From Diadema antillarum (lineage: Eukaryota), in contig NW_027271135.1 in NCBI RefSeq assembly GCF_040938485.1, positions 62,001-126,000 of the forward strand: a DNA stretch of 64,000 bases, written 5' to 3'. Positions 2,984-40,307 of the stretch are shown here, in pieces. A program made the position numbers and the translations under genes. Numbering within the stretch: the stretch's first letter is position 1; every line of letters begins with the position of its first letter. Under the pieces are notes generated by a model. The model was not told the origin of the DNA. It saw only the letters and a list, made by a program, of their open reading frames with translations, and searched no databases.

Positions 2984-3482
2984 TTGAATAATGGCGACAT
3001 ACACTGAGAGTTTAAAAACCTACAACCGGTTATCCCCTGTATTACGCCCTCATTATTGGGGGAAAGTTGAGAATGTTTATTTATTTCATTTTTTTTCCTC
3101 TACAGGATCTTAGTTCACCTAAAACCATTCTAATGCTGATTGAATTTACTTGATGAATTGAATTGAATTGAATTTTCACGTGATGTGAAAGGATCCGCCA
3201 CACCAATCTACTTTTGTTTTTAGTTTTAGAGTTCACTCATGGGCGGATAAGAGCGGATACACATGTCAAATATGTCTATAGCCACAATCTGGCGCTAATG
3301 TGAAGTAATGCACTACACTGCATGATAAACCATCAGCTTCTAAAAATATACTTGATAGCCTAAGGTACTATGGAAGGGAAGTGGACTTCGGACTTCTTAC
3401 TATCTGTAAACATATGTATCAATGTAGCATGCTTGGTCGTCTACAGCTGATGTATGGTTTGCAACTTTAGGCCAACGCTAAG

Positions 3483-4385
3483 ATGGCTGGAGTTTCTCCG
3501 TCGAGCCTCTGGCCTCGGCCGTTCTGGATACTCCTTGTTCTTGCATTTTCACCTGGACCTCTCGTTCAAGCTTCCAGGTTTTTGCTTCCCGCCACCTCCC
3601 TGGCCATCGCCAAGAGTCACTATATGGGACTAAGCACTATCACAAGAGAACTGGTACTACGAGGACATGAAGTCACTTTACTGCTCCTTGACAGGCGGGG
3701 AACGGCTGGCATGCTAGAAGGCTCTTACACCGACAACATCACTTACCCAAACTCGAAATCTGATGAGGAACTAGCCGCGGTATGGAGAGACATGACAGAT
3801 GCAATGGACAATTACTCAAGTTGGACCATATCGCAGACTGTCAAGAAGATTTCAAAATTATACGATAATCTGTACTTTGGTTGCTACGAGCTATTCCAGC
3901 ATGGGGAAACCTTGGGAAAGCTGGAGGCGAAAAAGTTCGATATGGTGCTGTCCTCTCCAGTGGCAGATGCTTGTGACACTGTGATCAGTGCTTATTTGGA
4001 TGTATCCTTAGCTGTAGTCACAGGATCCCGACGAAGTCCGTCTTTCAACGAAGACATCTTCGGCATACCCGTTCCAAGCTCGTACACCCCATACAGCCTC
4101 GCTCTTCAGCTCCCAGCCAACATGAATTTCTGGCAGCGGTTGGCAAATTTTGTGACAAGATACACCATTCATCCCGTGATTGAGTATTTCGCGATAACTC
4201 TGCCAGTCGGCAGGCTGCAGGAGATGTATGACATCAGAAGAGACCTTATTCCGAAGCAACTGCTTCAGAGGGCCGACCTCTGGTTGTGTCACACCACTTT
4301 TGCACTGGACTCTGCCCGACCCATTACGCCAAACTGGGTTCCTATAGCTGGATTTACCACCAAACCACTTAATCCTCTGCCACAG
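3483..4385 (+). CDS. UGT: UGT variable exon 1, copy A (signal peptide + aglycone-binding N-terminal domain, 301 codons)
   Basis: The ORF shows UGT N-domain motifs SHYM (catalytic His46), ELVLRGHEVT, KFDMVLS, PVPSSYTP, MNFWQRLANF and ARPITPNWVPIAG. It ends at phase-0 donor CAG|gtaccg (4385/4386). Confidence 0.93.
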
Positions 4386-6009
4386 GTACCGACATAAACT
4401 TCGCATTTTCCTATAGGTGTTCCGATCATGCCCCGAATCAAGGGTCGTTTTTTCCTATTAAAATTCCTATCTATTCACCATCACCAGGGTTACTCATTTC
4501 CCTTTTAGTGAAAATCGTTGGCTGTATGTATGATTATACATGAAATTAGGTTCATTTTTAGTTGTCAAAATTGACATCAGTGCAGCGCACCTCAACCATC
4601 CCCCAGTGACGCCACACAGGCATGAGTTCATGCACTGCTGATGACGGCTGTCCAGAACGTAACAGGTGCATTCCTTAGTCCAAAGAATGGACGGCCATTC
4701 ATGAAGTGAAAAAAAAAAAAATCTCTGACAGTTCTTCTGTCTTCTGCCTTAAACGAATGTAGAGAGCCATGCGTTCTCTCCGAAGCTGTTGAGACCATCC
4801 TGACTGCATGTTAGCGGCTGACGATCAGAGATAATCGTCTCCTTAGAGCACAAAACATATGAAAAGCCGTATAAAGATTCCAGTTTTTTTTTTATTCATC
4901 CCTTTCCAAGTAGGTCGTGACGAACAAATCTCTTTGTAAGGGTCTAGTCAGGTGCAGATAGAGGATGCTCGCGACATTCTGTAGCTGCGAACGATTTTCC
5001 TCAGTAGATTGACAGTTCTGTCAGCCGTCGCCTCTATGAGTTCGCAAATGCTGTGTGCTTTGACGAGAAAAGCGCACTGACCTCATCCGTGGAATGCCAT
5101 TTGAACAACATCTGCAGGGAATGAGAGCCCATAATTATGTTCACCATCTCCGCAATGGTGTATTCATAGAACAGAATGATGATAGGACATCTTCAATGGA
5201 TTCAGATACGAGTATGATGGGTTGACTTTGGTAATGTCTAGGCCCTTCTCGCCGTTGACTTTCCTCCACTACAACATGAGTTCCTATATAGTTTCTGCTC
5301 GGAATTCGCCATGATGACCGTATAGTTACATCGAAGATTATTAAATATACTTTCCCGACAGAAAACCCCACGATTACTATGTGTACAATAATGAAAGCAA
5401 GTTTGGCGGCATGATGCAACTTTGTCTTATATCATGTATATTGTACTTCCGTCCTCACCGACACATGCTTTATACTCCACTGTATCTGACCTGTTAGTCA
5501 CAATGCACGTTTTTTTTTTGATAAGTTCTACATAGTGGGAGGGGTGGGGCATCAATATCTAATGCTGATAGTTACTATATCGACCGTCGATGCATATGCT
5601 TGCCACGGTGAAAAGTCTTTGCCATTAGTCAACGAAGCACACATCAAGATCGGCGGTCTGCATTTCACTTATATTACTTTACCTGTACATCATTCTCCAA
5701 ACAAAGGTGGTTTTTCTTGACACCGAGTATAGATTCGTCTTCACAATCTCTTTGTAAGGAAAGTTCTTGGTAATTACCGTAAACTAAGCTCACCCTGCCT
5801 ACTTCTGCTCCATACAAGTCTCCCATCTGTATGCCGGAGATCCGAAAGTCTTTTTGTGCCCGTCGTATATAGCGAGACCTCCGGGATCTCAGCGGCACTA
5901 TAGATTCTCTGAACAAGAGGTGGGATAGCGTTATTCGTATCGCCTATAGGAGAGAGATGGCTTCGATAAAGACAGACAGTCCGTCATGGTCTTCTTGAGC
6001 CCTTCTCTA

Positions 6010-6250
6010 CTTGATTGTTTGTTTGTTTGTTTGCTTCTATCTTTTTTGTATTCCTTTTTTTTTGTATTTTCCATCTGACTTGGCTGGCTGGATAGCCCAT
6101 ATTCCGCTGCAAACAGTGTAGTTGGTCTTCCATGGGACCCAGTTGTTGTATATATAGGAGGCGGTACACGTACGTCGAAGTTATGCACCCTGTGTTCATT
6201 ACTGTGAATGGAGCGGGTTGTGGCTCTCACACACATGTGACACACATGAC
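6010..6250 (-). mobile_element. SINE/LINE 3'-tail fragment (duplicated at ~13480-13810)
   Basis: A (gttt)n tail plus 'ggctggatagccc...tggtcttccatgggacccagttg' matches the 3' end of the SINE at 45501-45860. Confidence 0.5.
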
Positions 6251-9200
6251 TTCAATCTGTGCGAGGCAGAGTCTTTTTAATGAAAAACACAGCATTGCTC
6301 AGTAAGACTCAATATGGGCTCGAACTCGCTGTATTCATTTTCGAGAACTTTTTTCTTGTCGCAGTGAAATTTTTAACATGTTGAAAAAATCTTTGGAACA
6401 AGCACTTTGCAATGATAAACGCGCTTTCGATGTTGATTACATCTGTTAACGAATTTGAATGCAACTAATAACGAACTTTGATGAAATACAAAATTCGCTG
6501 CATAACATTTTCAAACATTCGTCGCTCAGTGAGACAACCCCTTAACAGGACACGTGTTTCCTAAAGGGGGTATCTCACTGAGCAACGAATTATTGCGGCT
6601 GCACAGTGAGATACCCCCTTTACAGGACACTTTCCCTTTCTGGAAAAAAACATTTGCTCTCATAGGCTCATATACTGTGCGTATTTTGGCTGGCTCATCG
6701 AAAGACCATTCCAAGTCATACAATCATAAACGAGATACTGTATGTCTGTATTTTATGTCTGTACATGTATACACTATATGTTTGTGTTTAATGTCCTTAC
6801 TTTCACACGAGATGTACCACAACCCGTTGCAGTTAATTTGATTAGATCTATAATCAGTGACAGGGAGAGTCAGACGAGACGCAAAAATTAGATATGACTT
6901 CAAATATTTCTTTTTTTCTGTTGAATGAATGCATTAGAAATATGCGCTACAGAACCAACCAAGGCTAGTCCTCAAAAGCTAGGATGACTACATTGTAGAG
7001 ACATTCTATGAACCTATATTTTAGCGTATGATAACTGGAAGAGAAAGGAGAAAGGTGAACAAGTGATTCAGGTCAACGATGCTGTGATCTGATAGATTTT
7101 TTTTTCGATATTTCCTGCTGTTTCCTGCATACCGCTGGGAAAGTAAACTCCCCATCATGGACAATGTGCCTTTTATGCCGTATAAGGGTCAACGCCACAC
7201 CAGTGTACATCCCACATACCCCATCCCATCCCCAAATGATGAAAGGTTTCTGCACAGATGGAAAGAACGAATCCGATGACGGAAACAACCTTATATGATA
7301 GGGACATTTCCAGCAGCATAACAAGAGCAAAATCCCATGATTTTTTCTCTTGTTGTTGTTTCTTATACATTGTATAAAAAAACAGTCATGTATTGTGTGG
7401 CAGACCGGTCAGACTGGCGGTGTGTTTGCGCGTTTTGCACTTTTTTGAAAGGTGCTTTGTGAATTGATATAAATGAATAGAAAAAGGATATATTTATTTA
7501 TTTAGTTATTTATATGATGTATGCATGGTTTGTTTACACGCGAAATGTACTTATGTACTATATATTCATAGGATATCACACACAAATCTTCAACACAAAG
7601 CGAATGTGTGTTCACCCTATAGAGTGACTCATTGTACATAAAATTGACATAATGTGTATATTATGTTTACATGCACACACGCGCGATCGCATACACAGTT
7701 TATGTTTTTTTATATAATAGAATATTGATGACATAAGGCACACATGACTGGGCGTTACTTTGGATTATTAAGTTGTATTACAACATCCTCCCACTAAGTC
7801 CAAACTTTGACGTTATACGTTACAAAAACGGCCGTGTTTATAGATAAAGACGTCTGAAAACAAAATGATGAAATTTTTATGAAGGCCCTAATTTCTAGAG
7901 AGGAAATGCATGAAGGTGTATTTGAAAGCCGCAGTGATAGACGTAGTAGGTGATATTCTTATACAAATCTTCAGGTGTATTACTCGTGAGGGAACAAATC
8001 GTGATAATGTGACCTTATAGGAGGGCACACAGATCCTACAGATTTGTCTGGTTTCTCAGGTTACCCAATACCATGCTGAGAATGGGGGATCCGTGATATC
8101 ATGGGGCTGTTATTTCTCGTTACGTGTCATGGGAGAGACAAAAGGCATTTGTACATGTTTTCGTCCCCGATTTAGCCAACCACTGATCCTATAGGTCCAC
8201 TCTGAACAATGCGTCTTGAAGTGGATGCATCAGAGGCACTGGGCTGCAACTGACACAAGGAGGTGATGCCCCGCCCACATCCCTTCCACCCTCCCCCCCC
8301 CCCCCCCCCCCCCCCGCACAAACACACACATCGCACCATCCTCCCACGGGTATCCGTGGGTCTACACCCTTCTTCCATTCAAACATTCTTCGTAACTTCT
8401 GAGACGATAGGATGTAGGTCATGGTACGCGAGTACCGACCCAGTTTAATTGAGATACAGTGTATAATGTGTTTAGTGTCTACTGTATACTTCGCATGAAG
8501 TCGAGGGCTGTCACATTATGAAAACTTAACGATCTTATTCCATGTCCCAGACGGCCTAATGACTTTTATCAAAATCGAAACTCCGTTTTCCGCTTATGAT
8601 TTCTGGTTTTCTTCAAGGTGTTTTTTTTTCCTTTTCTTTTCTTTTCTTTTCACATTTATACTTGGTCCAGTTAGTTACTGTTGACGTTTTGTGAGAATTT
8701 TCGGTGTGAAAATGCATTTCATCATATTAATTGTGTTATCTCCGATGAATTAACTGAGATAATAAGGTTATCTTCTAAGGTCTTCGGATTGTCCATCTCT
8801 CTGCTTACGCTGTTCAGTGAGTCATCTTTTTTTGATATGTGGGGTTTGCAAAGTCGTGGTATAAAGGTACACTTAAATATTAACTGTGTATGATATCGCA
8901 AAGAAGACGTTCTTTTTTCTGACTGTACGTGTTGGTACGATCATTTATAAGAACAGTGATGAATGCCGTTATTGTAATTGCTTTTGTGTTGTTGTTTTGT
9001 GGATGTGTGTGTTTGTGTGTGGTATCTTATTCTTGCATTTGGTCGCTTCTCACTTACTTTGTGTTTTGTTTGCTTGCTTTTTCCAAGTGCTGTGTTTGCA
9101 AAGAGGTATTTTACCGGTGTGGATCAACGCGCGAATTCAAACGCAAATATACCACCCAAGATCCGTAAGACTTGTGATTTCATTTCGCGGCACTTCGACT

Positions 9201-9888
9201 TGACAAGTCTTGTCGTGATTTGATACACTATATTTGGTTACGAAATAACAAGATAACTTAACCACATTTTATATTGTTATGTTCTCCAATGGGGGATTAT
9301 TTTTCGCATATAGTGTCAAATAAAGCACCAAATAATTGATCAAAACTATACGTCAATAATAGATATATAGAGTACCAACTTTTTTGTATTTTATGATACG
9401 CAGAAATTTCAGGAAGACAATTACAATTCCCACTATGTACAGAATTGTGATCTGTTCCAATGATATGCCCCGTTATGTAGGCTTACTCGCCTGACAATAT
9501 TAATGTGGGAATACTCAGAAGCTCTTGTCAATTACTTTGAGGCTCAATAGGGTTTCCCGACAGTTCATGCACATGAAACCATTTTTGCACTGGTTTTATG
9601 TATACTATCACAGAGGCAATGCTAAGAAACTGTCGATAATGCAAATTATCGGACCCGTCTACCTCAATCTAGTTCTGTTTGTTCTTGAGCTCAAGGCAAT
9701 AATTGGACACAGGAACAGTGAACAGAAAGTGCGCTATCACAAATATATCGCTGGTATGATTAATGTGGATATGAATTATAATAGCGCACTCTTCCCCTCA
9801 AATACTTTGAAGTGCACTTCACATGATGAAACCATCACCTACAGAAGAAGAAAAGAAATTACAAGCACACATAGCCTCCCGTAGGCCC

Positions 9889-9894
9889 TATAAA
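9889..9894 (+). promoter_or_regulatory. Candidate TATA box of UGT exon 1B
   Basis: TATAAA lies 109 nt upstream of the ATG at 9998. The equivalent position holds TATATAA in copy C. Confidence 0.5.
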
Positions 9895-9997
9895 GGAAGT
9901 GAACTTTGAACTTATTGTTATGTGGAAACATTTTGTAGCATGCTGGATCTTCTGCACTGCCACTATCTTTCTAGTCTGCAACACAGTCAGAGCGAAG

Positions 9998-10900
9998 ATG
10001 GCTGGAGTTTCTCCGTCGAGTCTCTGGTTTCGGCCGTTCTTACTCGTTGTTTTTACATTCCTAGCACATGGACCTTTCATTCAAGCTGCCAGATTTTTGC
10101 TTCCCGCTACCTCCCTGGCCAGCACCAAGAGTCACTATATGGGACTAAGCACGATCACAAGAGAACTGGTACTACGAGGACATGAAGTCACTTTCCTGCT
10201 CCTTGACAGGCGGGGAACGGCTGGCATGCTAGAAGGCTCTTATACCGACCTCATCATCTACCCGAACTCGAAATCCGATGAGGAACTAGCCGCGATAAGG
10301 AGAGACATGACAGATACAATGGACAGTTACTCGAATTGGACCATTTCGCAGATTGTCAAGAAGATTTCGGAATTTTACGATAATCTTCACTTTGGTTGCT
10401 ACGAAGTTTTCCAGCATGAGGAAACCTTGCAAAAGCTAAAGATGAAAAAGTTTGATATGGTGCTCTCCTTTCCTGTGGTAGATGCTTGTGACGCTGTGAT
10501 CAGTGCTTACCTGGATGTATCCTTAGCTATAGTCACAGGAACCCGACGAAGTCCGACTTTCAACGAAGACGTCTTCGGCATACCCGTCCCAAGCTCGTAC
10601 ACCCCATACAGCTTCGCTCTTCAGCTCCCAGCCAACATGAACTTCCGGCAGCGGTTGGCCAATTTTGTAACACGATACACAATTCATCCCGTGATTGAGT
10701 ATTTCACTATAACTCTGCCAGTTGGCAGGCTGCAGGAGATGTATGACATCAGAAGAGACCTTAGTCCGAAGCAACTGCTTCAGAGGGCCGATCTCTGGTT
10801 GTGTCACACCACTTTTGCATTGGACTCTGCCCGACCCATTACACCAAACTGGGTTCCTATAGCGGGATATACCACCAAACCAGTTAAGCCTCTGCCACAG
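9998..10900 (+). CDS. UGT: UGT variable exon 1, copy B (301 codons)
   Basis: Same motifs and length as copy A, from MAGVSPSS to phase-0 donor CAG|gtatcg. Confidence 0.93.
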
Positions 10901-11260
10901 GTATCGAGATAAATTTCACATTTTCCTGTAGGTGTTCAGATCATGCCCCGAATCAAGGGTCATTTCTACATATAAAAATACTATCTATCCACCATCATCA
11001 CGGTTACTCATTTTCCTTGTATATGGTGGAAATCATTGGCTTTATGTATGATTATACATGAAATTAGGTTCATTTTCCGTTGTCAAAATTGACATCAGTG
11101 CAGCGCATCTCAACCATCCCCCAGTGGCGTCACACAGGCGTGAGTGCGTGCACTCTGACGGCTGGAATGCAACAGGTGCATTCCTTAGTCCAAAGAATGG
11201 GCGGCCATTCATGAAGTGAAAACAAAAAATCTCTGGCAGTTCTTCTGTCCTCTTCCTTAA

Positions 11261-11693
11261 GGCTGCGTTCACATAGAAGTATACTATTCGGGTATTCGGG
11301 GCTCGTTTTCGAGGGCACGCGAATAGCTTGAATCGAACGATAGGATTTCCTCACACCGCTTCACATAAGAGGGCACTATTCGAAAGTACCGAATAGCTGC
11401 GAAAAGTATAGCAAAGTGGGAATCGAGCTTCTTCGATTTTCTTGCAGCGTATACCGTCTCTCGTTTATGAAATAATGGCAATTTTGGTCTGGATTTGCCC
11501 TTTAGCAAAAATAAGCATGTAGACTGACATTCTGATGCAGTTTAGAAATTGTAAATAAGATTTGCTGGGATGTAGGAGGAAGAAATCCTCACTGCATGGG
11601 ATGGTGAGTTGACGGTGCGGGTGATGGTGTACTCGGTGCCCGAATAGCGAATACCGAATACCGAATACCGAATACTTCTATGTGAACGCAGCC
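11261..11693. mobile_element. PIF/Harbinger (Tourist-like) MITE
   Basis: Perfect 22-bp TIR ggctgcgttcacatagaagtat and TAA TSD (11258-11260, 11694-11696). It is absent from the paralogous site in unit A (ccttaaacg near 4747). Confidence 0.85.
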
Positions 11694-11696
11694 TAA

Positions 11697-12154
11697 AGGG
11701 ACATTTCAGACGATTTTCATAATTTCACATCATATAGTACATAAATCGACAACTCCATGCATAGATTTATGGACTTTATTGTGGTTCTTGAGCAGAGAAA
11801 CAATACTTTGAAAAACCTTAAACAAATTACACTGAGCAAAAATGATGACATAGGAGGTTCACATATTTCAGATATCAGGCAGTGTAATTCCATTATACAA
11901 TACCGCTTGCTTTCGAGTTCACCTGTGTATAATCTATGCATGCCTTCTTCTTTTGTTCTGCTTCCTTGAGCCCCAACTCATGCATTCTTATGGTGACTCT
12001 GCCATGTCACCATCCTTGTTCATTGCAATTTGTTCTAAATTTTGAAAATATTCTTATTCTTCATCTTAATTATCGACAATTCTGAAACTCTGTCCTAAGT
12101 ACAACTAATATAGTTGTTCAAATGTAAAAATCTGAAAATCATCCAGAGGTCTCT
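11697..12154. mobile_element. Kolobok-like MITE
   Basis: Imperfect TIRs agggacatttcagacgattttca / tgaaaatcatccagaggtctct. TTAA follows at 12155-12158; the left TTAA was split by the Harbinger MITE. The site is empty in unit A. Confidence 0.7.
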
Positions 12155-24348: not shown

Positions 24349-24568
24349 GTCACCCAAGGGCGCGTCTTCTTATATACCACGGTGGCAGTGCGGGTGTGCA
24401 CGAGGCTCTATACTTCGGGGTACCAATGGTCATCATGCCCCTGTTCGGCGACCAGCCAGCCAACGCCGCGGCGGTTGCTGACCGAGAGCTTGGGGTGGTC
24501 ATTGACAGGAGCACAATCACTGAAGACAAGTTTCGGAAAGCTGTCCGACAAGTTCTGGATGATCCCAG
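24349..24568 (+). CDS. UGT: UGT constant exon 4 (220 nt; HPRARLLIYHGGSAGVHEALYFGVPMVIMPLFGDQPAN)
   Basis: tttttag| acceptor, AG|gtaacg donor. It contains the UGT signature and has the same 220-nt size as the homologous vertebrate exon. Confidence 0.95.
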
Positions 24569-25039
24569 GTAACGAGATTTTTTTAAAGGAAGTCACAGTT
24601 CCAGGAAATGAATTTCAGTGAAATTGGAAGTCTGTCGCCTGGAGTGCCATTGCTCAGGCGTAACGACTTTAGGCCGTTTCTATGTGTTCATTTTGGTTGT
24701 ACATTTGTATACATGTATTTATATTATAAACATATATGCATACATATACACGTAACTTCTTTGTTAGATCTCGTCAGCATTTTTCTTTTTGTTCATTTAT
24801 GCAAATATCAATTAAGAAAGATTGTAATCTATAGATAAGTGATGGTCAAAGACAAAGTAATGGCATGACTGGTTTCATTCTAAAGTCCTTTTTTGTCATG
24901 CTCACTGCTTCATACGCTGTATTAGGGAAGCGTGGATTTCTTGAGTGACATAACTGTCACATGATATGTCTGAGAAGAGATATAGATAAGGCCAAATCAA
25001 TATGAAAGCTCGAAATTTCTCGTTGATTTCTTGGTACAG

Positions 25040-25322
25040 ATACAAGACAAATGCAGCCAAAGCATCGGCCATCTTCCAAGACGATCTCATGAAGCCGCTA
25101 GACCGCGCCATATTTTGGATTGAGCACGTGGTCAAGTTTGGCGGGGCGCATCTACGTACAAGGGCCAATGACTTGAATTTCATCACGCGAAACTGCCTGG
25201 ATGTCCTAGCTGTTATCATTGCATCAGTCCTATTAATGATGTATGTGTTTGTCCGTTTCTTTATGTTGTTGACTCGATGTTGCTGTGCCAGAAACCGAGG
25301 ACAGAAAGTAAAGGCAGATTAG
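25040..25322 (+). CDS. UGT: UGT constant terminal exon 5 (TM helix + KVKAD ER-retrieval motif)
   Basis: tacag| acceptor (phase 2); PLDRAIFWIEHVVKFGGAHLR, a hydrophobic TM and a C-terminal KxKxx before TAG. The spliced total is 1629 nt = 542 aa + stop. Confidence 0.93.
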
Positions 25323-29622: not shown

Positions 29623-32600
29623 TTATTGATGCTCAGATTCCTGAACATATCCTTGCAACCTTTTAGTATCATGGAAAAAGGGCGACACCATCGGGAAGTC
29701 AAAAGCATTCGACTTGAACGTGAGTGTAGAATTGTCTGTGTCGTCATCAGATAAACACAGGAAAGGACAGCTTTTCGAAATATAGTCCTTGATGGATACT
29801 GATGGATTGGTCACTCTGCAGTGACTGAAGGATATGCAGCAGTTGTCATTGGTCACTAAGCCTAATGGCTTTTGCCCATACGTCATGATGCAACAGTTAT
29901 GGAAGTGAAGACAAAGAACGACATTTCCCAAACACTTTCGAGCCCAGAAAAGCACGTAGCCAATGTTGATCGGATCTACAACATGAATGAATCGGAGAGA
30001 GAACACACGTGGAGTCCCATCGCTGTGTACAAGGATTGGCTCTTGGCTATCATTCTTGTCGCGACATTCTCTCAAAGTTTTGATGTCTTCGATCTCGACC
30101 TCGCTCAAATCGCCAAGTACAACTTTAGCGAGAGAGAGTATTTCCAAATTTGGAAACATCCGACTAGTCAGAGACAAGATGGTGGGGAGGGAAATAGAAT
30201 GACCTCGATCGATGTCAACGAACTCCAATCTGAACTCTGCGAGTGAATCATTTTGGACATCTTCCGGGATAGATACTTCCCTGTTGTAAGAGAGATTCTC
30301 ACACCAGTGTGACAAACCGACCCGCTGCAGACGTGGACATGCCATCCCTACATGGGCTAGAACATCAGCCAAAGAACAACGTTGTGGAGGGAAACTCGAA
30401 CCCGCGATGATGACTTGTTCGATCCCCAACTTGTCAGGAAGTGATGAGTAATGAGATGAACGAAATTCAGGGATCCGAATCGTCATGAAAAGAAGATGAA
30501 GTTTGATTGTGTTTGGGGTGTACCGAGCAATCAGAAAGAATATATCTACGATCGAAAATTCTTCCAATGCTATATTCGACTTTCTTTTGACCACGTCGAT
30601 GCTTGCATTACCAACCTTCCTTAAGCGTATTTCGTCTACGATGAGTTGGGCTTTCACGTCGTCTGCACTGGGAACTATCTCGGTGTGAGAAGGGATGTAA
30701 GCTTTTAACTCATCAAGTGATAGCAGTGTCAGATGACATTTGCCTAACGATTGACCTACAACATCCAACACACCTGTAACAGATATATCTTCCATCATGT
30801 TCTTAAGACGCAGCTCCTCGAGACATGACTTTACAACGCATTCCTTCCGAGAGGTATCATGGCGATCCTCGACGGTCAACACAATGTCGTGCAAGAAGCA
30901 TCTTTTCATGGCGGAGCAGAAACCACTCGCAACACCAAGAAGCTCAGAGAGTGACAACTGGTTATCAACAAAACCAATTTCCAAATCCTCAATTGCAGTT
31001 GACCCAACCCGAGGCATGAGATCTGGATTGTGCTCATGAAGAACTAGCTCAACATAGGAGACATGCAGACATCGCATGTTCTGACACTTTCTTGCAAACA
31101 GGTGCAGCAGATCGAAAAGAGACACTTGCGTGCTTATGCTGTTGATATGAAGTTTCTGAACACTGCATTGCTGTTCATTACTCTGCCTTACAGTTTTGCA
31201 TGACTCATGAAGGTCAAGTTCTGTGTAAGTGAGCGATATGGTAGCAACATCAATCTTCATCTGCGACAGTATGTTCATTAACCCTGAAAGATGAACAGAC
31301 TTTTGACATTTGTTGAGACTGAGTTCTTCAAGTTTGAATGTCTCTAGGGATGGTCCGGGTAAACCCTCCAGCGAGAAGTCTCCCGTGAAATCGGAAACGA
31401 AGATGCTTTTCAACTTTCGATAGCTCTTTGTCGTGAGTGAGAGAAGATCGGACAGAGAAATCGTTTCAATTATGTCGAACATTGACAGACTGGTGCATGG
31501 TTGAAAGCTAACATTGTTAGGTAATGCAAACTTCAGATAGTAAAGGAAGCTGTGACAAAGGCTGCCATCGTAGTCCTGGCGTTCTGGGTTGTGTCCATCC
31601 AGCTTCTCAATCATTGGAAGCAAGTCTGCCTCGGACCCACTCTCTTGATTGATCATGAGGCTCAGCAGAAATAGAGACCTCATAAAATCATGCGACTTTA
31701 CGACAAGCATTTCATCAAGGAATTCCGGCACTTGTTCGTCAATGCCACTCAGCTCACTATGTAGATCAGCTTCTGTCTTCTCATTATCTTGCAAAGACAC
31801 AAGGTGTTCAACTATCTTCCTAGATCTCACACGATTGTCGTAACTCCCTTCACGCGCCCTTCGTTGGCAGCTGAATACCAACGTGTACTGTAAAGATATT
31901 GTCTGGGCAGCGTTGGACATCCCTGCCAAGGTTGACTCCATGACTTCGGGGTGTGACGCGATGAAATCTCCGGCACATTTTTCTTGGAACAACAAGTGTG
32001 GAAAGGAGTAAACAACCTTGAGAGACTCAAATGCATCATGATGTATTTTGGCCTTTTGTCGAACAAGCAGTCCAATTTTCAAGCCAATTTCAATCATGCG
32101 TGTTTTGTGCCCAAATTCGTCTCTAGGGAAAATTAACTTCTTCCCGGGTTTCAAGACGCCCTCGAGCGCCATTTTCCCAAGATCATCCCAGAACTTTTCT
32201 AGCACAGGCATGTCCACCTCGTCTGGAATCTCATGATAGAGGGGTTTCCTAGATTCACCGATCTTGTCTATGTTATTGACAAAGAGGGCACGAAGAAACT
32301 TGGTGAACAGGGAATTCATCGTATCGGCTTCGGTCGTGTCTTCGGAGCATGTCTTTTTGAGATAGCATACCATGGAAAGAAGGATTGGCACACGCGCCAG
32401 GTGGCGAATAACCCCGCTATATTTTATCTTCTCCAGGCACTGTCTAGCCGCCCGATCATCAGGAGCAAAGTACTGTTTGACAAAAGAATCGACCCCCTCT
32501 GAGTCAAATCCGTCAAGACTTACCTGAGCGTACATGCATGTTTGCTTTTGAAGCAAACATGTGTGCCACGGGCGGGTCGTGACCAGAGTCGTAACTTCGG

Positions 32601-33205
32601 CCATCATTTTGCCTGCCAGAACATCATTAATGTCTCCTTTATAGCTATCTGGATCAAATTCATCGTAGCCATCGAGAATGAGCTTAACCTCTGTTGGATT
32701 CGACTGAATAAACCTCTGTATATGCGATCAGGAGTTATCGAACTGTCTTTGCATATAAGCTGGGTGTGTATGGCCTCGGCTACGTCCCCCGAACCCTGAA
32801 GTCTACGGAACTCAAGCGCACAAAGTATCTTAACGTCCTTCAGGGGAGACTGTGGCACCTTCTTTGCCCAGTCATAGGCAAGTTTCTTGCACAGGGTACT
32901 CTTACCGGTTCCACCCTCACCGAAAACCAGAATTCGATCTGCTATGCTGCCATCTATCCAAAGGTTGAAAAGGTCGTTGTGCGAATTTTTCAGCTTATCT
33001 TTTGTCTTCTTACGGGATCTCGTGTCGACTTCCTGTCGCAAAGAAAGAGAAATGAAGTATTCATTGAGGTCCACCAGCCTCTCGTCCCAGGGATCGGTAG
33101 TCACAGTGCAATAGATCTGTTTGTAGTACCTTCTCAGTTCCTTTGCAAATATTTCAGCAAACTGCTCGTCTTCTATATGTGCTCCCTTTGAATAATCCGT
33201 GTTTT
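29623..33205 (-). CDS. NLR terminal exon: NACHT + helical domains + atypical LRRs (3583 nt, frameshift at ~32713-32717; gene or pseudogene)
   Basis: Walker A RILVFGEGGTGKS is in ORF 32604-33215. Walker B KLILDGYDE, LVTTRP, VPILLSMVC, WHD FPHLLFQE and repeated SLxDLL...L..L.L units are in the frame of ORF 29623-32607. Acceptor tttacag| at 33206/33205 (phase 1). Confidence 0.88.
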
Positions 33206-33898
33206 CTGTAAACATAAAAAAATCAGAAAAGAAAGACGATATGATTTAGTTATTTCAATGTTGTTTACGTCAACTTCACTCTGTATTTTCTTATCCTGTT
33301 CCTCACTGATACGTGATAGAAGGTCAATCTTCAATATTGCATTTTATCCCTCAAGAATGTTTGGCAATAAAGGGATAATGATTAAGATTATATGATGGAC
33401 TCCTGTTATAACAAAGTCCTCGGAACCGGCAGTTTTCTTCCATTATATCGAAATTTCGTTAGAACCGTACAAATAAACAATAAGAATACATAGAGTGGAT
33501 AATGTGGCGGCATTAATTTTCACTTCGTTGTAACCAGAATTTTATCATAACCGTGTTCATTATGATGGGAGTGCACTGTAATTATAATGCAGTGTAACTT
33601 TTTATTTTCTATTATAGAAATCGAGATAAACTCAAGTGGCTAGCGTCTTGAGTGGAAACCAACAACGAAAAGAGAGATCTATCATAGTGATAGTATTACT
33701 ATCCAACAATTATTGTTACAACAGTGAGTACGACTTGTGATTATGGGTAAATTCATTTACGCCTACCTATAAATTTGTGGGGGGTGTTTTACGAGCTACA
33801 ATGTATGTTTCTAAAAAATGGTGTAATGTCTAGTTTTGTGAATCACTAACACTTACTCAGCTTAAAGAGTAAATGCGACAAACAAAAGACAATTATAC

Positions 33899-34195
33899 CT
33901 TTTCTTAAGCACTTATCGGCAGTTTGAACCATCCCGATTTGGTCCAGCTTAGATGCCAAAAGATGGCGTCTACCCTTTTCGCCGGGAGTCTTCTCTCTCC
34001 ACGTGAACAGCATGTGCGTCGTACCATCCACAGTTACGTTGTTGTGAAGAAAATTTGTCTTTTGGTATCTCTCGATTTCAGGATAACCAAAGCCAAGTAG
34101 GAGACCAAGATCAGGAACTTTGGATACATCGACACATTTGGCAATATCTCGCAGCTCAGTGTCAGATACATCGTCCGTACTAATACATCTTTGTT
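33899..34195 (-). CDS. NLR exon encoding a DEATH domain
   Basis: SDTELRDIAKCV...DLGLLLGF...EIERY...MLFTWRE...LASKLDQIG shows the death-fold helix pattern. The donor G|gtataa (phase 1) fits the next exon. The acceptor is ambiguous (34197 via CAG vs 34195 via GAG). Confidence 0.8.
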
Positions 34196-34533
34196 CTCTG
34201 AAACTTAAAAATACAACCAAGACAACACGATGAAAATCAGCATGAATTTGTGCAAAAGACTTCAATGAAAACTACAGCTTTACGAGTTTGTCATTTGCAT
34301 CATTGCAGTTATAATCGATATTTTGCCTGGCAGAAATCATTTGCATTCTCGAAAACACTCTTTCTAAGAGTGTAGGCTTACTTGTTCCATTGGCACAATC
34401 AACAAGCAATTAGGCACAATGACACTGAAGTACTGCCTATAGATAAATATCTACCATCACTTTAGGAATATCACCTGACATGTAAAGAAATTTGACTATG
34501 AAAGTGAAAATCACGCTAACTAATTATCCTTAC

Positions 34534-34983
34534 TCTGCGAGTTCTGTTTGGACGAGGTTAAAATTGATGCAGATAGTGACGTAGAGACCAATCCCTGCTC
34601 CCCTCTACGAGATGACGAATACTCCACGTTTCCCAACTCCTCAGACAGTGGCGTTTTGTCTTCTTTCCGTTGGAGCGTCCTCGCAGCACTAAGATCAGTT
34701 GGTAACTGAGGCAACTCATCTTGACTGATTTCTGCTGGTGGAGATGATATCGGGACATCGACCGGCTCTCTTGGAAGAGGTTCTTGCTCGGTGTGCTCTG
34801 ATGTTCGGGTAGATAACTCTCCTTCTGTACGGCTCTGATTCGCCGCCGGTGGTGCTTGCACCGAGGAAGTCTGTGGGGATGTCAGTGACTCACTTGCTGG
34901 TGATAGTGGGGGCGGAGAGGGCGCTCTTGCATGTACCATGACAAGACGGGCTCCAACTTGATCTTCTGTGTGCAGAAGAATGT
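34534..34983 (-). CDS. NLR exon encoding a Pro/Ser/Glu-rich disordered linker
   Basis: 150 open codons; ttacag| acceptor (phase 1) and A|gtaagg donor (phase 1). Confidence 0.7.
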
Positions 34984-35302
34984 CTGTAATAATACAATTC
35001 TGCTGTACATTTATGCTTTAAAAACTGTACAGCTTAAAGCGTGCCCCCAAACACTGACGAAGGAATCAAATTTTACATTTGTTTTTTGCATACTATAGTT
35101 TAGATTTATCGAAATTATGACAAAACTAGCATTTGTTTTTCTTTGGCCTTTTAGTTTGCGTGTTCGCTTGTTTGTTTGTTTTATGGTTTTTCCTTCTTTT
35201 CTTCAAATCATGAAAATACAGCTTAAGTATATGCGTTTTGTGTAGGAAGATTCTTACACACGCCATATTTTAAATCACTCTAGTCTTTCCCTCGATCATT
35301 AA

Positions 35303-35871
35303 AGGACAAGTTCAACTTCATAAACATAAGAATTGAGAGAATGCAACAATATTAGTAGAACACATCAGTGAAAGTTTGAGGAAAATTGGACAATCGATGC
35401 AAAAGTTATGAATTTTTAAAATTTTTGTGTTGGAACCGCTGGATGAGGAGACTACTACAGCTTGTGAGTCATATGCGTACAACAGTATAAAGAAAATGTA
35501 AAAGAAAATTCAACATATTTTCACTTTTTTCGCATAATAAAAGAGCACTTGACTTGCCTCTTTCTAAAGGCAGGGGGAATAATATTACCCATAACATTTG
35601 TCAGTAACCAGTCAGGGGAATGTGTACTTTTTTCAAAAGATGGAATTGTGTGAAATTCTCTTTATATTTTCCTTATATTGTTGTACGCATGTGACATCTA
35701 AGTTATTCATACACTGCAGTAGTCTTCTCATCCAGCGGTTACTGCACAAAAACTTCAAAAATTCATAACTTTTGAACGGATTGTCTGATTTTCCTCAAAC
35801 TTTCAATGATGTGTTCTACTAATATTGCTACATTCTCTCAATCCTTATGTTTATGAAGGTGAACTTGTCCT
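35303..35871. mobile_element. Kolobok-like MITE
   Basis: TTAA TSD on both sides (35299-35302, 35872-35875); TIR aggacaagttca...tgaacttgtcct extends into long imperfect inverted arms. Confidence 0.85.
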
Positions 35872-36109
35872 TTAAGGTGCACAGGTAATTAAAATCTTAC
35901 CTTCCTCTGGTTCAAAGCTTTATCTGCCTTGAATAGTGCCCTTCCTATAGCATCGCACATACATACTGCATTGCCCATTTTTAACATAACAGAGGTCTTC
36001 TAGAGACCATCTTATACATTCGATATAATTATACAGTATCTATCAAAAAAAAAAGAGAAAGAAATAAGGTAATCCATCGTTGGAGGGTTATTATTCATAA
36101 TTGTCAACT

Positions 36110-36985
36110 CTACACGGAGAGCACAATGTTGGTTGTGAGGAGAGAGGAGCTCTTTTTCTCTTCATTGATATCTAATTATGTCGATTTAATGTCATAAACA
36201 TGAGTGAGCACATGAACTTTAAAGACAATGACAAATTGCACTTTTTTTCAAAATTTGAGTGTCACATGAAGAAAAATGAGGGAACGATGAATATCTCAAT
36301 GAATAGATGAGATTATAACTTTTAACATGTCCACCTGTCTGATGACCTGGTCACTTCCACAAAAGCCAACCCACACAATCCTTTTTTCTGTTTGTTTTTC
36401 AACACATAGCTTGCAGCGTCAAACCATGTCTTTTTACGAAGAGAGAAAAATAAAGTTACCGACAACGTGGCCGTGTTGAAAGTTATGGACCACAAAAGGT
36501 TAGAAGAAACCCTAAACACACACCTGCAGTCGTGCAGGCTGACCTGTTAATTTTACCACTTTCATTAACAGACCTCATCCATTCAGTGAGACATTCATTC
36601 CGCTTGAAAGATTCATCTGATTGGAATGTCAACTGGATAGACGTTCATTTTGTCCCAATCAGTTGCAATTTACCTGTTTGATGAGACTTTGGCTATTTGT
36701 AGCGATCGATGTGAAGAAGCTTACAGATCCAGTAGGTGAAATCTTATCAAACAGATAAATCGCAACTGATTGTGACCAAAAAAAAGAATGAACTTCTATC
36801 CAGTGAAACATTCATTGTTGCTTCACGATGACACTCAAACTTGGTAAAACGTACAATTTGTCATTTTTGTCTTGTTTGAAGTTCATGAGCTCAGTCATGC
36901 CTGACATTTGTCAATCTGATTAGGTATCAATGGAAAGAGGAAGAGTTCTTCTTTCCTCCCAACCAACATTGCGCTCTCCATACAA
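36110..36985. mobile_element. Foldback-like element with long imperfect TIRs and an inner inverted pair
   Basis: ggagagcacaatgttggttg (~36115) pairs with caaccaacattgcgctctcc (~36960-36980). An inner inverted repeat pairs ~36632-36690 with ~36740-36805. Confidence 0.6.
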
Positions 36986-37586
36986 TACCATAGCTGAAAA
37001 TCATGAAATAGTAACCCTCTTAATTTGGATTACCTTTTTTTATACGCACTGTAGATTCTTACAAAAATAGCACATTCGTAGATGTGACAACAAATTAGTC
37101 GTTTGGTAAGTCATTTGGGACGCATTTTTTTTTTCAGAATAAGAAAATTTATAAACACAATCATACACTGTAGATGATGTTCTGTCTGATGACAAAGTAA
37201 AATTCACGCAATCATATTGTTTTACTCCCTTCGATGCACAGGTTTACATAGAGATTATATAAATTTTCATTCAAGCTTCAAGCTCTATACCTCGAGGCTA
37301 AATCTGCGGTATAGACATATGAGGTTGATTTACAAACATTTTGTTTGACTTGATTTATGGACTTTGCCTTTGGTTATCACATTTGCCTGTGTGCATTTTC
37401 ATATTCACTTCATGATAATCAATGTGATCAAAGAGTCGAGTCAATCTTTGTTCACACACCATTTGTACTGCGTATACGTGTATGTGTGGGGAGCACTATA
37501 CAGCACAAGCTAGGAACAATGTAAAAAAAAAATACATTTTCATGCAAACACTGCAGGCAATGGCAGGGGACGTAGTTTTAATCCCG

Positions 37587-37947
37587 CAGAGCTACCAAGT
37601 CTCACGCATTCTGCGTGAGACTCAAGCATTTAGGGGCCATCTCACGATCTCACGCATGGCACCCATTCCTCTCACGCATCGGGCCAAGTCTGCCACTTGG
37701 GCCCATAATAATGAGCATAGCTCAAAAGATTGAAGTGATAGTTGCAAATGAAGGTATATTTCCCTTTTGTCTCCCCAAATACACCTGATCGCACCATTAA
37801 GAGCTAAAAATTGAAAAAGCTCTGTACAGTGGGAGGCCACAGGGGGAAAAACCCCTCCCACACCCTCGCTCGCGCGCATAATCGCATGCCGAGATGCCGA
37901 GTCATGAAAATCTCACTCATAAATTTTTTTTGAACTTGGCATCCCTG
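37587..37947 (-). mobile_element. hAT-like non-autonomous element with 6-bp TSD
   Basis: cagagctaccaag...cttggcatccctg flanked by atcccg/atcccg; same family as 48662-50780. Confidence 0.75.
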
Positions 37948-38054
37948 ATCCCGTCCAATTTCAAGTAAAATAGTTGAGCTGTCTTTTACGACCACCAGGT
38001 CGAAATCTATCTATAAAAGTTGCTTCCATATAGGGTCTACACTCACAGTCCAAC

Positions 38055-38083
38055 CAGGGAGGTGGAAGTGTTCCACCTCCCTG
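38055..38083. mobile_element. 29-bp TIR-only element with 7-bp TSD
   Basis: gtccaac|cagggaggtggaa-gtg-ttccacctccctg|gtccaac. Confidence 0.65.
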
Positions 38084-38907
38084 GTCCAACAGTATAAAGG
38101 CGGTTGTACAAGTCACTGTTCAGCAGAATTTCACTTATTAAGTCTGCATAAATCTCAAGTTTGAAGTACGTTAAATGTTTATATAAACTCCTCAAAATAA
38201 GTTCTGCAATAAAGTTTGATATATCATATTTCTCTTATACCTGCATTATCTTCATTAAACATGACGTCATAAGAAAGCCTGATTGATTATCTTTGAATGA
38301 CATCTCACTTGCCGTGATTGGGTGTTCTTGGAATATGCAAAATAGTTGAGTATGGGGACAGATCAAAGGTGAAAAGTCGCAACAATTCTGCTATTTATAA
38401 CGTACAGTTTTGACGAAAAAGGCCACAGGAATAAGGAAAGCTGAAATGAACTTTCAAAAACTCCTATTTCCTTGAAATAAGATGACTTTTTGGTCAACCT
38501 TTATGTTTAATTTCAATCTGCAGATACTACTGCAGTTTTTAATTCCTGGATGAAGCCTGGAATCTAATGATAATTTCACAATGCATTCTTTTCAAGCACA
38601 TTCCTTCCGTGCAACGACAAAGCAAATGGGAACTCTACACTGTTTGACATAATACAGTATGTTTGCTCTATTTCGCAACATTTCACACTTGACCTCTCCT
38701 CATACTCAGTCATACTGTGCATTCCAGGAATGCATAATGTAAACAAGCGAGTTGTCGTTGTAAAGAAAATAAATCAGGTTTTCATATAATGTCACATTTG
38801 AATAAAATGATGTAGTTTTAAGAGAAATATGATACATCAAATTGAACTTGGAGAACTTTTTTTGAGGAGTTTGTAATCTTATGCATGAGGATATAGTAAT
38901 TTATATG

Positions 38908-38910
<3 letters not shown>

Positions 38911-38958
<48 letters not shown>
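38911..38958. repeat. (AT)n microsatellite
   Basis: Direct reading. Confidence 0.9.
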
Positions 38959-39003
38959 TGCTTTCTAATTAATTTCAAGATATTTAAAAATGTTGATTTT
39001 TAC

Positions 39004-39247
39004 CCTGTGGCGCTCCAGTGTGAATTGTTAGTACATTGGTGTCTGTGAAGTCCTCAAACACTGCTGCTGTGATTGGCTGATCGTTGTAGGTGATAAGACT
39101 TGACTCATGGCCATAGAGAGTCTTGCATTCAGTCAACAGCTGGTCCAGGGAAGCCGCTTCCACCTCTCCAAGTCTTCTCCTGTCTTTGCCATCGTCTTGT
39201 AGAATGATAAACGACTTCACGGGGCCTTCTGCAATCGTTTGTCGCTT
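39004..39247 (-). CDS. Putative NLR exon 2: beta-grasp-like (CIDE-N/PB1-like) domain
   Basis: tattcag| acceptor (phase 0), G|gtaaaa donor (phase 1). It encodes KSFIILQDDGKDRRRLGEVEAASLDQLLTECKTLYGHESSLITYNDQPITAAVFEDFTDTNVLTIH. The phases link 40146 to 39247 and 39004 to 34983. Confidence 0.65.
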
Positions 39248-39608
39248 CTGAATACATGAAATAGTGGTCGATTTGAATGAATGAATGAATGAATTTGTTT
39301 TAAGTGACCGCTGAGGAAGAAGTGGATGGTATAAAATAAAAGCAAGCAGCCACGGCTTGCCCCTCCCAGCCCACCTTTTTTTTTTTTTTTGTGGGGGGGG
39401 GGGGGGAGGCATAATAACCACTTTGGGCCCCCGCTTTTAAACCCCGGAAGTGTCTCTAGAAGAATGTTTTGTTGTTTTTGCGTTCAAGCCGATTAACCCC
39501 CGAAAACGTACCTTGCAGAAAACTGCCGCTGAAGGCGTTTCTGTGTCAGCTGATGAAACGCGGAAGTGGCATCAGTATTGTAACTGCCCACCCCCCCCCC
39601 CAAAAAAA

Positions 39609-39641
<33 letters not shown>

Positions 39642-40145
39642 CTTTTAAAAACGCGGCGCCGGCATTTAGGACAATGGGGGAAGGGGTAGGTAATAAGTGT
39701 CTTGCTTATATAGGGGCAATCGCTATAGCCAGCTAGGAAAATCGAACCATGGCATATCTTGACTGATAGTCTGCGTGCTTTCATCCACTGAGTCACAACA
39801 GTTTCTCAAAACACAACGATAGCATAATATAGGACCTATCATACCCTGACAGTAGTTAAATCAAGGGAAATCACTTTCAAAGTTTTGCGGAAATTGCTTT
39901 GATTATTCTGTACCATTGAATAATTAGATGATAACTACACATTAGTTACAATGTCCTATTGAGCTGCACTGATTACGAATATCATAAACACAAACTCACA
40001 CCATGGTGAATCACATTCATAAAATCTTGTGAATGAATTATGCATCTCTGTGCGCATAAATAGGCCCACATAGTATTAAGCACCAAAATGAATGTATGAA
40101 TGATGAGAAATTACATAAAGTAGACCCAGTTTCATTAAAACTTAC

Positions 40146-40307
40146 GAAACGCCTGGATCTTGAAAAGGAAAGAGACCTCCTCAGCCGAGAGAGCCTCCCT
40201 CTTCCAGCCGAGGTTTGGCCGGCAATGAGGTCTGTCTGCTCCGCTTGTTGCTCCCCTCCTGGAACATGAGGCGACGATTTCTGGCTTCGAGAAAATCTGT
40301 TTCCCAT
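40146..40307 (-). CDS. Putative NLR first coding exon: MGNRFS myristoylation motif + polybasic segment
   Basis: ATG in good context (gagATGg); 54 codons to |gtaagt (phase 0); contains RGRLSRLRRSLSFSRSRRF. Confidence 0.65.

Follow-up and report, generated by a model that had tools for sequence, protein, structure and literature searches.

A UDP-glucuronosyltransferase locus of Diadema antillarum with a UGT1A-type variable/constant layout and predicted sharing of four downstream exons

In the human UGT1A locus, 13 variable first exons precede a common set of 4 exons. A UDP-glucuronosyltransferase (UGT) locus with this kind of anatomy is present in the DNA considered here, a stretch of 64,000 nucleotides (the window; positions 62,001 to 126,000 of contig NW_027271135.1, RefSeq assembly GCF_040938485.1) that a first-pass annotation, made from the letters alone, had assigned to a probable echinoderm and that does come from one, the sea urchin Diadema antillarum. 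On the + strand of the window lie three first exons, designated A, B, and C, followed by a single set of four downstream exons. Based on the gene anatomy and its conservation, it is likely that these constitute one UGT gene with a variable/constant layout, in which A, B, or C would be spliced to the shared exons and each would be expressed from a separate promoter; exon sharing by A and B in one form or another is somewhat more probable still.

In the proposed process, each first exon would be served by its own proximal promoter, and the 5'-most donor of a given pre-mRNA (at 4385, 10900, or 20066) would be joined to the sole compatible in-frame acceptor, at 22292, so that any first exons lying downstream would be removed with the intron (17.9, 11.4, or 2.2 kb). 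The UDP-sugar-binding domain and the transmembrane anchor would come from the constant exons, as would a KxKxx retrieval tail for the endoplasmic reticulum (ER). The outcome would be three ER enzymes of 542 amino acids that have the donor half in common and differ in the acceptor domain, and that may therefore act on different substrates. The array itself was built by tandem duplication of a unit of ~6.5 kb in the Diadema lineage.

Anatomy of the locus and its predicted product

The array is contained in three + strand open reading frames (ORFs), at 3483-4397, 9899-10912 (with its ATG at 9998), and 19104-20126 (with its ATG at 19164). Counted from the common MAGVSPSSLW start to a CAG/GTA donor in phase 0 (the slash marks the exon end), A, B, and C are each 903 nt long (301 amino acids), and all three end in ...PLPQ at the donor. 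The exons of the gene are as follows.

3483..4385, + strand: variable first exon A, signal peptide and whole N-terminal acceptor-binding domain; 903 nt, 301 amino acids; donor CAG/GTACCG
9998..10900, + strand: variable first exon B; 903 nt; donor CAG/GTATCG
19164..20066, + strand: variable first exon C; 903 nt; donor CAG/GTATAT; the sole first exon that RefSeq links to the constant exons
22292..22348, + strand: constant exon 2; 57 nt, phase 0 to 0
23126..23291, + strand: constant exon 3; 166 nt
24349..24568, + strand: constant exon 4, UDP-sugar-binding core; 220 nt, the length of human UGT1A exon 4
25040..25322, + strand: constant exon 5, end of the C-terminal domain, transmembrane helix, KVKAD tail, and TAG stop; 283 nt

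The first-pass annotation had described three intact 903-nt segments that end at a phase-0 GT donor, and its coordinates hold to the base. It had also proposed that one set of four exons (57+166+220+283 nt) completes any of them. This is confirmed: all four constant exons have AG/GT borders, TAG closes the last one, and A, B, or C together with them gives 1629 nt, that is, 542 amino acids and a stop. The model composed of C and the shared exons is identical to RefSeq XP_071492269.1 (P0009), a protein named UDP-glucuronosyltransferase 2C1-like, and the C-to-exon-2 junction agrees with RefSeq's own model. The size and the AG/GT borders of the short exon 2 are the same on a second D. antillarum contig and in Diadema setosum. 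(The intron just 5' of exon 2 contains an 82-nt direct repeat, at 21160-21241 and 22183-22264, with 80% identity; the upstream repeat was considered as the site of a second exon 2 and rejected, since no copy of exon 2 follows it.)

Each first exon matches the Pfam UDPGT profile (PF00201) over positions 6-263 of 499, with E values of 1e-27 to 1e-29 and scores of 97-103 bits against a gathering cut-off of 19.5, which places all three in the UDP-glycosyltransferase superfamily (GT-B fold); the last exon matches profile positions 411-493 with 66 bits. A further claim of the first-pass annotation, that A and B have no downstream exons of their own, is borne out by a lenient tblastn (E<=10, word 2, no SEG). 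When the full model was searched against both strands of the 64 kb, only the seven known pieces were recovered. Because this search returns one set only, A and B are without private exons 2-5, whether intact or decayed, and self-blastn of the window gives none either. A single set of constant exons is also found in two further assemblies. Of the defining parts of a UGT1A-type variable/constant gene, the locus has at least two tandem first exons with an ATG and a whole N-terminal domain, one constant set, and in-frame donors. Copies of exon 1 alone are an exception in this genome, because other UGT paralogues of D. antillarum are complete tandem genes. The D. setosum locus around a C-terminal-only UGT model (P0106) has no exon-1 array.

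The predicted product has the topology of an ER-resident UGT, with a signal peptide, a C-terminal transmembrane helix, and a cytosolic dilysine tail, in agreement with the ER anchoring that the first-pass annotation had suggested. The N-terminus is hydrophobic, the strongest hydrophobic window (residues 502-528) corresponds to the transmembrane helix, and the tail, ...GQKVKAD, fits KxKxx. The WLPQ...HGG...GDQ stretch, which is the UDP-sugar-binding signature region, begins at residue 368, and residues 292-462 align to the solved C-terminal domain of UGT2B7 with an E value of 4e-46. (A PROSITE-type UGT regular expression has no match in the model and was dropped in favour of the Pfam and solved-structure matches.)

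In human UGT1A1 the catalytic pair consists of H39 and D151 (PMC1885805). The His is present, within SHY, in all Diadema copies, whereas the Asp is replaced: in the column that reads FLDP or LSDP in vertebrates (residue 158, near 3954, 10469, and 19635) A has Ser, B has Phe, and C has Ser. This column is Ser, Thr, or Phe in the other aligned sea urchin and sea cucumber UGTs in which the region is included, Asp in the brittle star and vertebrate UGT1/UGT2 sequences, Tyr in the amphioxus sequence, and Glu in a UGT3A1. As the replacement extends to the remaining sea urchin and sea cucumber UGTs of the alignment, it is a trait of the clade and not decay of the locus.

Conservation, selection, and age of the array

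The layout recurs in three assemblies. A second contig of the D. antillarum assembly (1,028,590 bp; loci L001 and L002) carries a collinear locus with 94-97% nucleotide identity, in which ~8.4 kb of extra DNA between B and C (merged L002/L001 coordinates 13948-22321), which may be a transposon, extends the B to C distance to 19.3 kb, compared with 9.2 kb in the window. The D. antillarum assembly is 1.73 Gb in size and has 84% duplicated BUSCOs, and on this basis the two contigs are read here as haplotypes; the authors of the assembly favour real duplication instead. In D. setosum (OZ188201.1) the order is PfkB, three first exons of 903/906 nt, exons of 57/166/220/283 nt, and a NACHT gene on the opposite strand. 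The three-copy layout between PfkB and the NACHT gene is thus common to the window, to the second D. antillarum contig, and to the chromosome assembly of D. setosum. The first-pass annotation had raised the concern that the assembly might have collapsed or missed private exon sets for A and B; since three assemblies agree on the layout, an assembly artefact is rejected.

Among the nine first exons of these assemblies, the three copies of A (two from D. antillarum and one from D. setosum) are all intact. The copies in the window differ from one another at 43-65 of the 301 N-terminal residues. The variation clusters in the signal peptide and in residues 101-140; residues 261-280, which lie just ahead of the C-terminal domain, are invariant in all nine. 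Positional orthologues of D. antillarum and D. setosum were compared for selection, with Fisher p values for the first exons.

A: pN/pS 0.28 against D. setosum copy 1; Fisher p 8e-8; 0 gap columns in exon 1
B: pN/pS 0.33 against D. setosum copy 2; Fisher p 5e-5; 0 gap columns in exon 1
C: pN/pS 0.39-0.41; Fisher p 1e-5 to 8e-5; 9 gap columns (alignment of a 3-nt length difference)
Constant exons: omega 0.16-0.19; exon lengths identical between the species

Hence A and B have pN/pS values that are not above that of C, the copy with an annotated junction. Insertions and deletions are kept out of A and B (0 gap columns) as compared with the 600-nt flanks of the first exons, which have 34-342 gap columns, and the omega of the constant exons is below the pN/pS of the variable exons, as expected of a variable/constant gene. 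In addition, copy-specific differences are fixed in both species (13 for A/B, 28 for A/C, and 19 for B/C), which argues that A and B have not merely been overwritten by C. Taken together, the comparative data favour A and B as used coding exons under purifying selection.

The orthologue in Strongylocentrotus purpuratus adjoins PfkB and has the same pattern of downstream exons; it has one first exon in the whole RIO1-PfkB interval. Synonymous divergence (dS) is 0.20-0.28 among the paralogues, 0.13-0.20 between the Diadema species, and >1.9 to S. purpuratus. Together with the single first exon of S. purpuratus, these values place the origin of the array in the Diadema lineage, before the split of D. 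antillarum and D. setosum and after the split from the Strongylocentrotus lineage. It follows that the array was not inherited from an ancestor common with vertebrates, but is convergent with UGT1A, and the single first exon at the syntenic S. purpuratus locus speaks directly against descent from the vertebrate UGT1 cluster. The count of variable exons at the orthologous locus, which the first-pass annotation had suggested as a check, is three in D. setosum and one in S. purpuratus. Its description of the duplication as recent stands insofar as the duplication postdates the split from the Strongylocentrotus lineage; within Diadema it needs qualification, as all three copies predate the split of the two species. 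(It should be noted that current RefSeq divides the S. purpuratus orthologue, at 16.54 Mb of AAGJ06000007.1, into proteins of 303 amino acids, from exons 1-2, and 238 amino acids, from exons 3-5; an older model, XP_011665924.1, unites the exons into 526 amino acids.)

The duplication can be followed in the window itself, where self-comparison resolves the following features.

3352..20261, + strand: the whole tandem duplication; self-blastn, 76-92% identity
3352-9890, + strand: unit 1 of the tandem duplication; repeat unit of ~6.5 kb
9892-19032, + strand: unit 2, lengthened by insertions
19033-20261, + strand: unit 3, partial; stops 195 nt past exon C
19460..19514, + strand: gene-conversion tract of ~55 nt in exon C, copied from B; in the C allele of this haplotype

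Self-comparison of the window gives no upstream copy of the intron that runs from 20262 to exon 2. First-exon proteins are 84% identical for A and B, 86% for B and C, and 78% for A and C. B and C have at least 1.5 kb of upstream sequence in common, and A has only ~130 nt upstream of the ATG in common with them; otherwise A retains a flank that adjoins PfkB and is conserved with D. setosum, and this is counted as the ancestral 5' flank. Conversion is evident from the two C alleles, in that 21 of the 34 differences between them fall at 19460-19520; the window allele is identical to B at 19 of those 21, and within the tract its identity to B is 95%, versus 67% for the other allele. When the nine first exons are placed in a maximum-likelihood tree, A falls with D. 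setosum copy 1, and B and C do not separate cleanly, probably as a result of reticulation through conversion; for this reason orthology is assigned from position, flanks, and pairwise dS. The array evolves by birth-and-death together with some gene conversion.

Several other features of the region were observed. Pseudo-ORFs rich in Cys and Val at 8886-9203 and 18104-18406 derive from TG/GT-rich simple sequence of the duplicated unit; they lie in the tail of unit 1 and in that of unit 2, respectively, and are homologous to each other. The spacer between PfkB and exon A contains, at 1571-2105, short repeats in tandem or dispersed copies with 69-76% identity. Downstream, on the - strand, there is a large NLR-type gene (29623-40307), which includes a single ORF of 994 amino acids at 29623-32607; its orthologous neighbours on the second contig and in D. 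setosum match Pfam NACHT, and the 994-amino acid ORF itself has no Pfam match.

Joining of the first exons to the shared exons, and the alternatives

The sequences that would direct the use of A and B are conserved along with the exons. CCACAG/GTA is kept in all nine copies, and the donors are in phase 0 and in frame with exon 2; A and B match the donor consensus at 6 of 9 positions, versus 7 of 9 for the annotated donor of C. On the 5' side, ~200 nt upstream of the ATG can be aligned in all nine copies, with a GGAAGTG(G/A)ACTT motif ~95 nt before the ATG. In vertebrate UGT1, too, each variable exon is preceded at a fixed distance by a conserved motif (PMC1885805). The upstream blocks, which may contain the separate promoters, are as follows.

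3290..3482, + strand: conserved upstream block of A, candidate core promoter, with GGAAGTG(G/A)ACTT ~95 nt 5' of the ATG; homologous to the B and C units from ~3352-3374 onward
9800..9997, + strand: conserved upstream block of B; a TATAAAGGAAGTG element lies ~95 nt 5' of its ATG
18965..19163, + strand: conserved upstream block of C, with a TATATAAGGGAAGTG element

A number of observations weigh against a gene with three promoters and shared exons. Beyond +3 the donors of A, B, and C are all weak. A TATA-like form of the upstream element is found only in B and C of D. antillarum, and not in A or in D. setosum. Pyrimidine-rich AG motifs occur 12-30 nt before each ATG, which may leave room for an upstream leader exon or for aberrant splicing from one first exon to another. 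In B of the second contig, the frame is shifted by a 7-bp insertion (L002:10680-10692), which brings a stop after residue 235, and the RefSeq model of this copy is a 235-amino acid protein (P0003). The insertion is not at a homopolymer, and there is a separate 3-bp insertion as well; B of the window is intact. We read the frameshifted B as a null allele, which would be tolerable in a gene with shared exons, B being dispensable at least when heterozygous.

Annotation and protein collections count against the joined products as well. RefSeq (Gnomon) has A and B, in both D. antillarum and D. setosum, as separate single-exon genes of 304 amino acids, with no joined isoforms; these models run from exon 1 through the donor to a stop three codons on. 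Furthermore, searches sized for full-length and partial joined products found no product joining A or B to the shared exons in a collection of 15 billion proteins. This blank is uninformative, however, because the cluster that contains the product of C and the shared exons has NCBI and UniRef sources only, with no copy derived from a sequencing run. (Proteins of 322 amino acids from Logan contigs were considered as support for exon sharing and rejected, as they represent exon 1 with intron read-through and cluster at >=90% with S. purpuratus proteins.)

An alternative is that A and B are not spliced to the shared exons at all, being either stand-alone 304-amino acid genes, with neither donor domain nor anchor, or non-functional copies that look intact. 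In favour of this are the single-exon RefSeq models in two species, the in-frame stop that A, B, and their two D. setosum orthologues have 3 codons past the donor, the frameshift in one B allele, and the absence of a joined product from the protein collection. Nevertheless, we consider it unlikely. That A and B are relics is contradicted by pN/pS values of 0.28-0.33 (p<=5e-5), by the lack of insertions and deletions next to flanks that are rich in them, and by the copy-specific residues conserved across both species. As stand-alone genes, A and B would each encode the lone N-terminal half of a GT-B enzyme, lacking the UDP-sugar site, in which the 20 residues that precede the C-terminal domain are nonetheless invariant. 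In addition, no conserved polyadenylation signal follows the stop: AATAAA/ATTAAA does not occur within 1.5 kb past the B donor, and an ATTAAA after A is not conserved. Finally, a 304-amino acid model that extends to the first in-frame stop is what a gene predictor using protein homology alone is expected to give. The RefSeq models of A and B in the two Diadema species are probably mis-split.

A more specific version, in which A and B are conserved half-UGT genes whose 304-amino acid acceptor-domain proteins reside in the ER lumen or secretory pathway, is compatible with the evidence, because selection on coding sequence cannot separate a half-UGT from exon sharing. Such proteins might be binders of small molecules or modulators of the full-length enzyme; we regard their existence as improbable. 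Marginally less probable again is that the exons are shared through mutually exclusive splicing, with one promoter and a non-coding leader exon upstream of A that is joined to an acceptor before one ATG and from there to exon 2: the pyrimidine-rich tracts ending in AG upstream of each ATG, which are conserved among the copies, would suit it, but no leader exon is known, the ~200 nt of conserved upstream sequence has a promoter-like motif at a fixed distance, as in the variable exons of vertebrate UGT1 (PMC1885805), and the known UGT and protocadherin precedents have separate promoters.

Comparison with known variable/constant systems

A single UGT gene with separately promoted first exons and shared downstream exons would resemble vertebrate UGT1A most closely. 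In both, tandem first exons encode the signal peptide and acceptor domain, and four constant exons encode the donor domain, transmembrane helix, and dilysine tail. In both, a variable exon is found broken (B of the second contig in Diadema); the UGT1A locus contains pseudo-exons among its variable exons. Exon 1 of human UGT1A1 ends at codon 288 with ...NPLSQ in phase 0, and is followed by exons of 132, 88, and 220 bp (PMC7067894). The Diadema exon 1 ends with ...KPLPQ at the aligned position and has the same phase-0 boundary intron, so the UGT1A-style design put forward in the first-pass annotation holds down to the intron that divides variable from constant exons. Because the phase-0 ends of exon 1 align in this way, the boundary intron is taken to be ancient and the same in the two genes. 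Both genes also have a penultimate constant exon of 220 nt, whereas exons 2 and 3 are 57+166 nt (223) in Diadema and 132+88 nt (220) in UGT1A1.

The Diadema array is unlike UGT1A in that it is not orthologous to it, numbers only three variable exons, whose proteins are 78-86% identical, and has Ser, Phe, or Ser in place of D151. Its isoforms are predicted from the genes. The Diadema locus has a conversion tract, whereas for vertebrate Ugt1 conversion is reported not to be prevalent (PMC1885805). UGT2A1/2A2 and the zebrafish ugt1 and ugt2 clusters are also similar, in having a few alternative first exons with downstream exons in common (PMC1885805, PMC2819257); these belong to vertebrate lineages, unlike Diadema, which is an echinoderm. 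The clustered protocadherins have large variable first exons with their own promoters, constant exons, and conversion between neighbours (PMC1885805), all of which have counterparts in Diadema, the promoters as predicted features; they differ in being an unrelated family that functions in cell-surface identity and has tens of variable exons. At the level of structure, the closest solved relatives of the shared exons are the C-terminal domains of human UGT2B7, 2B15, 2B17, and 2B10 (2o6l, 6ipb, 7yan, and 7yf5; E ~1e-45, residues 292-462), which represent the donor domain only. No close solved relative of the variable N-terminal domain turned up.

Among invertebrates, a survey of Drosophila UGTs describes minor splice variants only (PMC8010143), and a case in Spodoptera is ordinary alternative splicing of one gene (PMC9209448); no precedent for an invertebrate UGT with a variable/constant layout was found in the literature searched. 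Li and Wu (2007) described the variable/constant organisation seen in Ugt1, Ugt2a, and Gcnt2 as specific to vertebrates (PMC1885805), and in UGTs this layout has been treated as a vertebrate route to diverse chemical defence, beside the protocadherins and antigen receptors. If the predicted junctions of A and B are true, an echinoderm has built the same design independently, with the same ancient phase-0 intron as its boundary, which would suggest that UGT gene structure predisposes to arrays of exon 1. Because the Diadema array is small and young (it has three exons, one conversion tract, and, on the second contig, a broken allele), its birth should be easy to study; D. antillarum is also a keystone reef grazer, whose detoxification genes are of practical interest. 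Comparative genomics supports this interpretation well, the steps at the level of the RNA being predicted: the locus exemplifies a known design, reached by convergence and still small and young, in a phylum that was thought to lack it.

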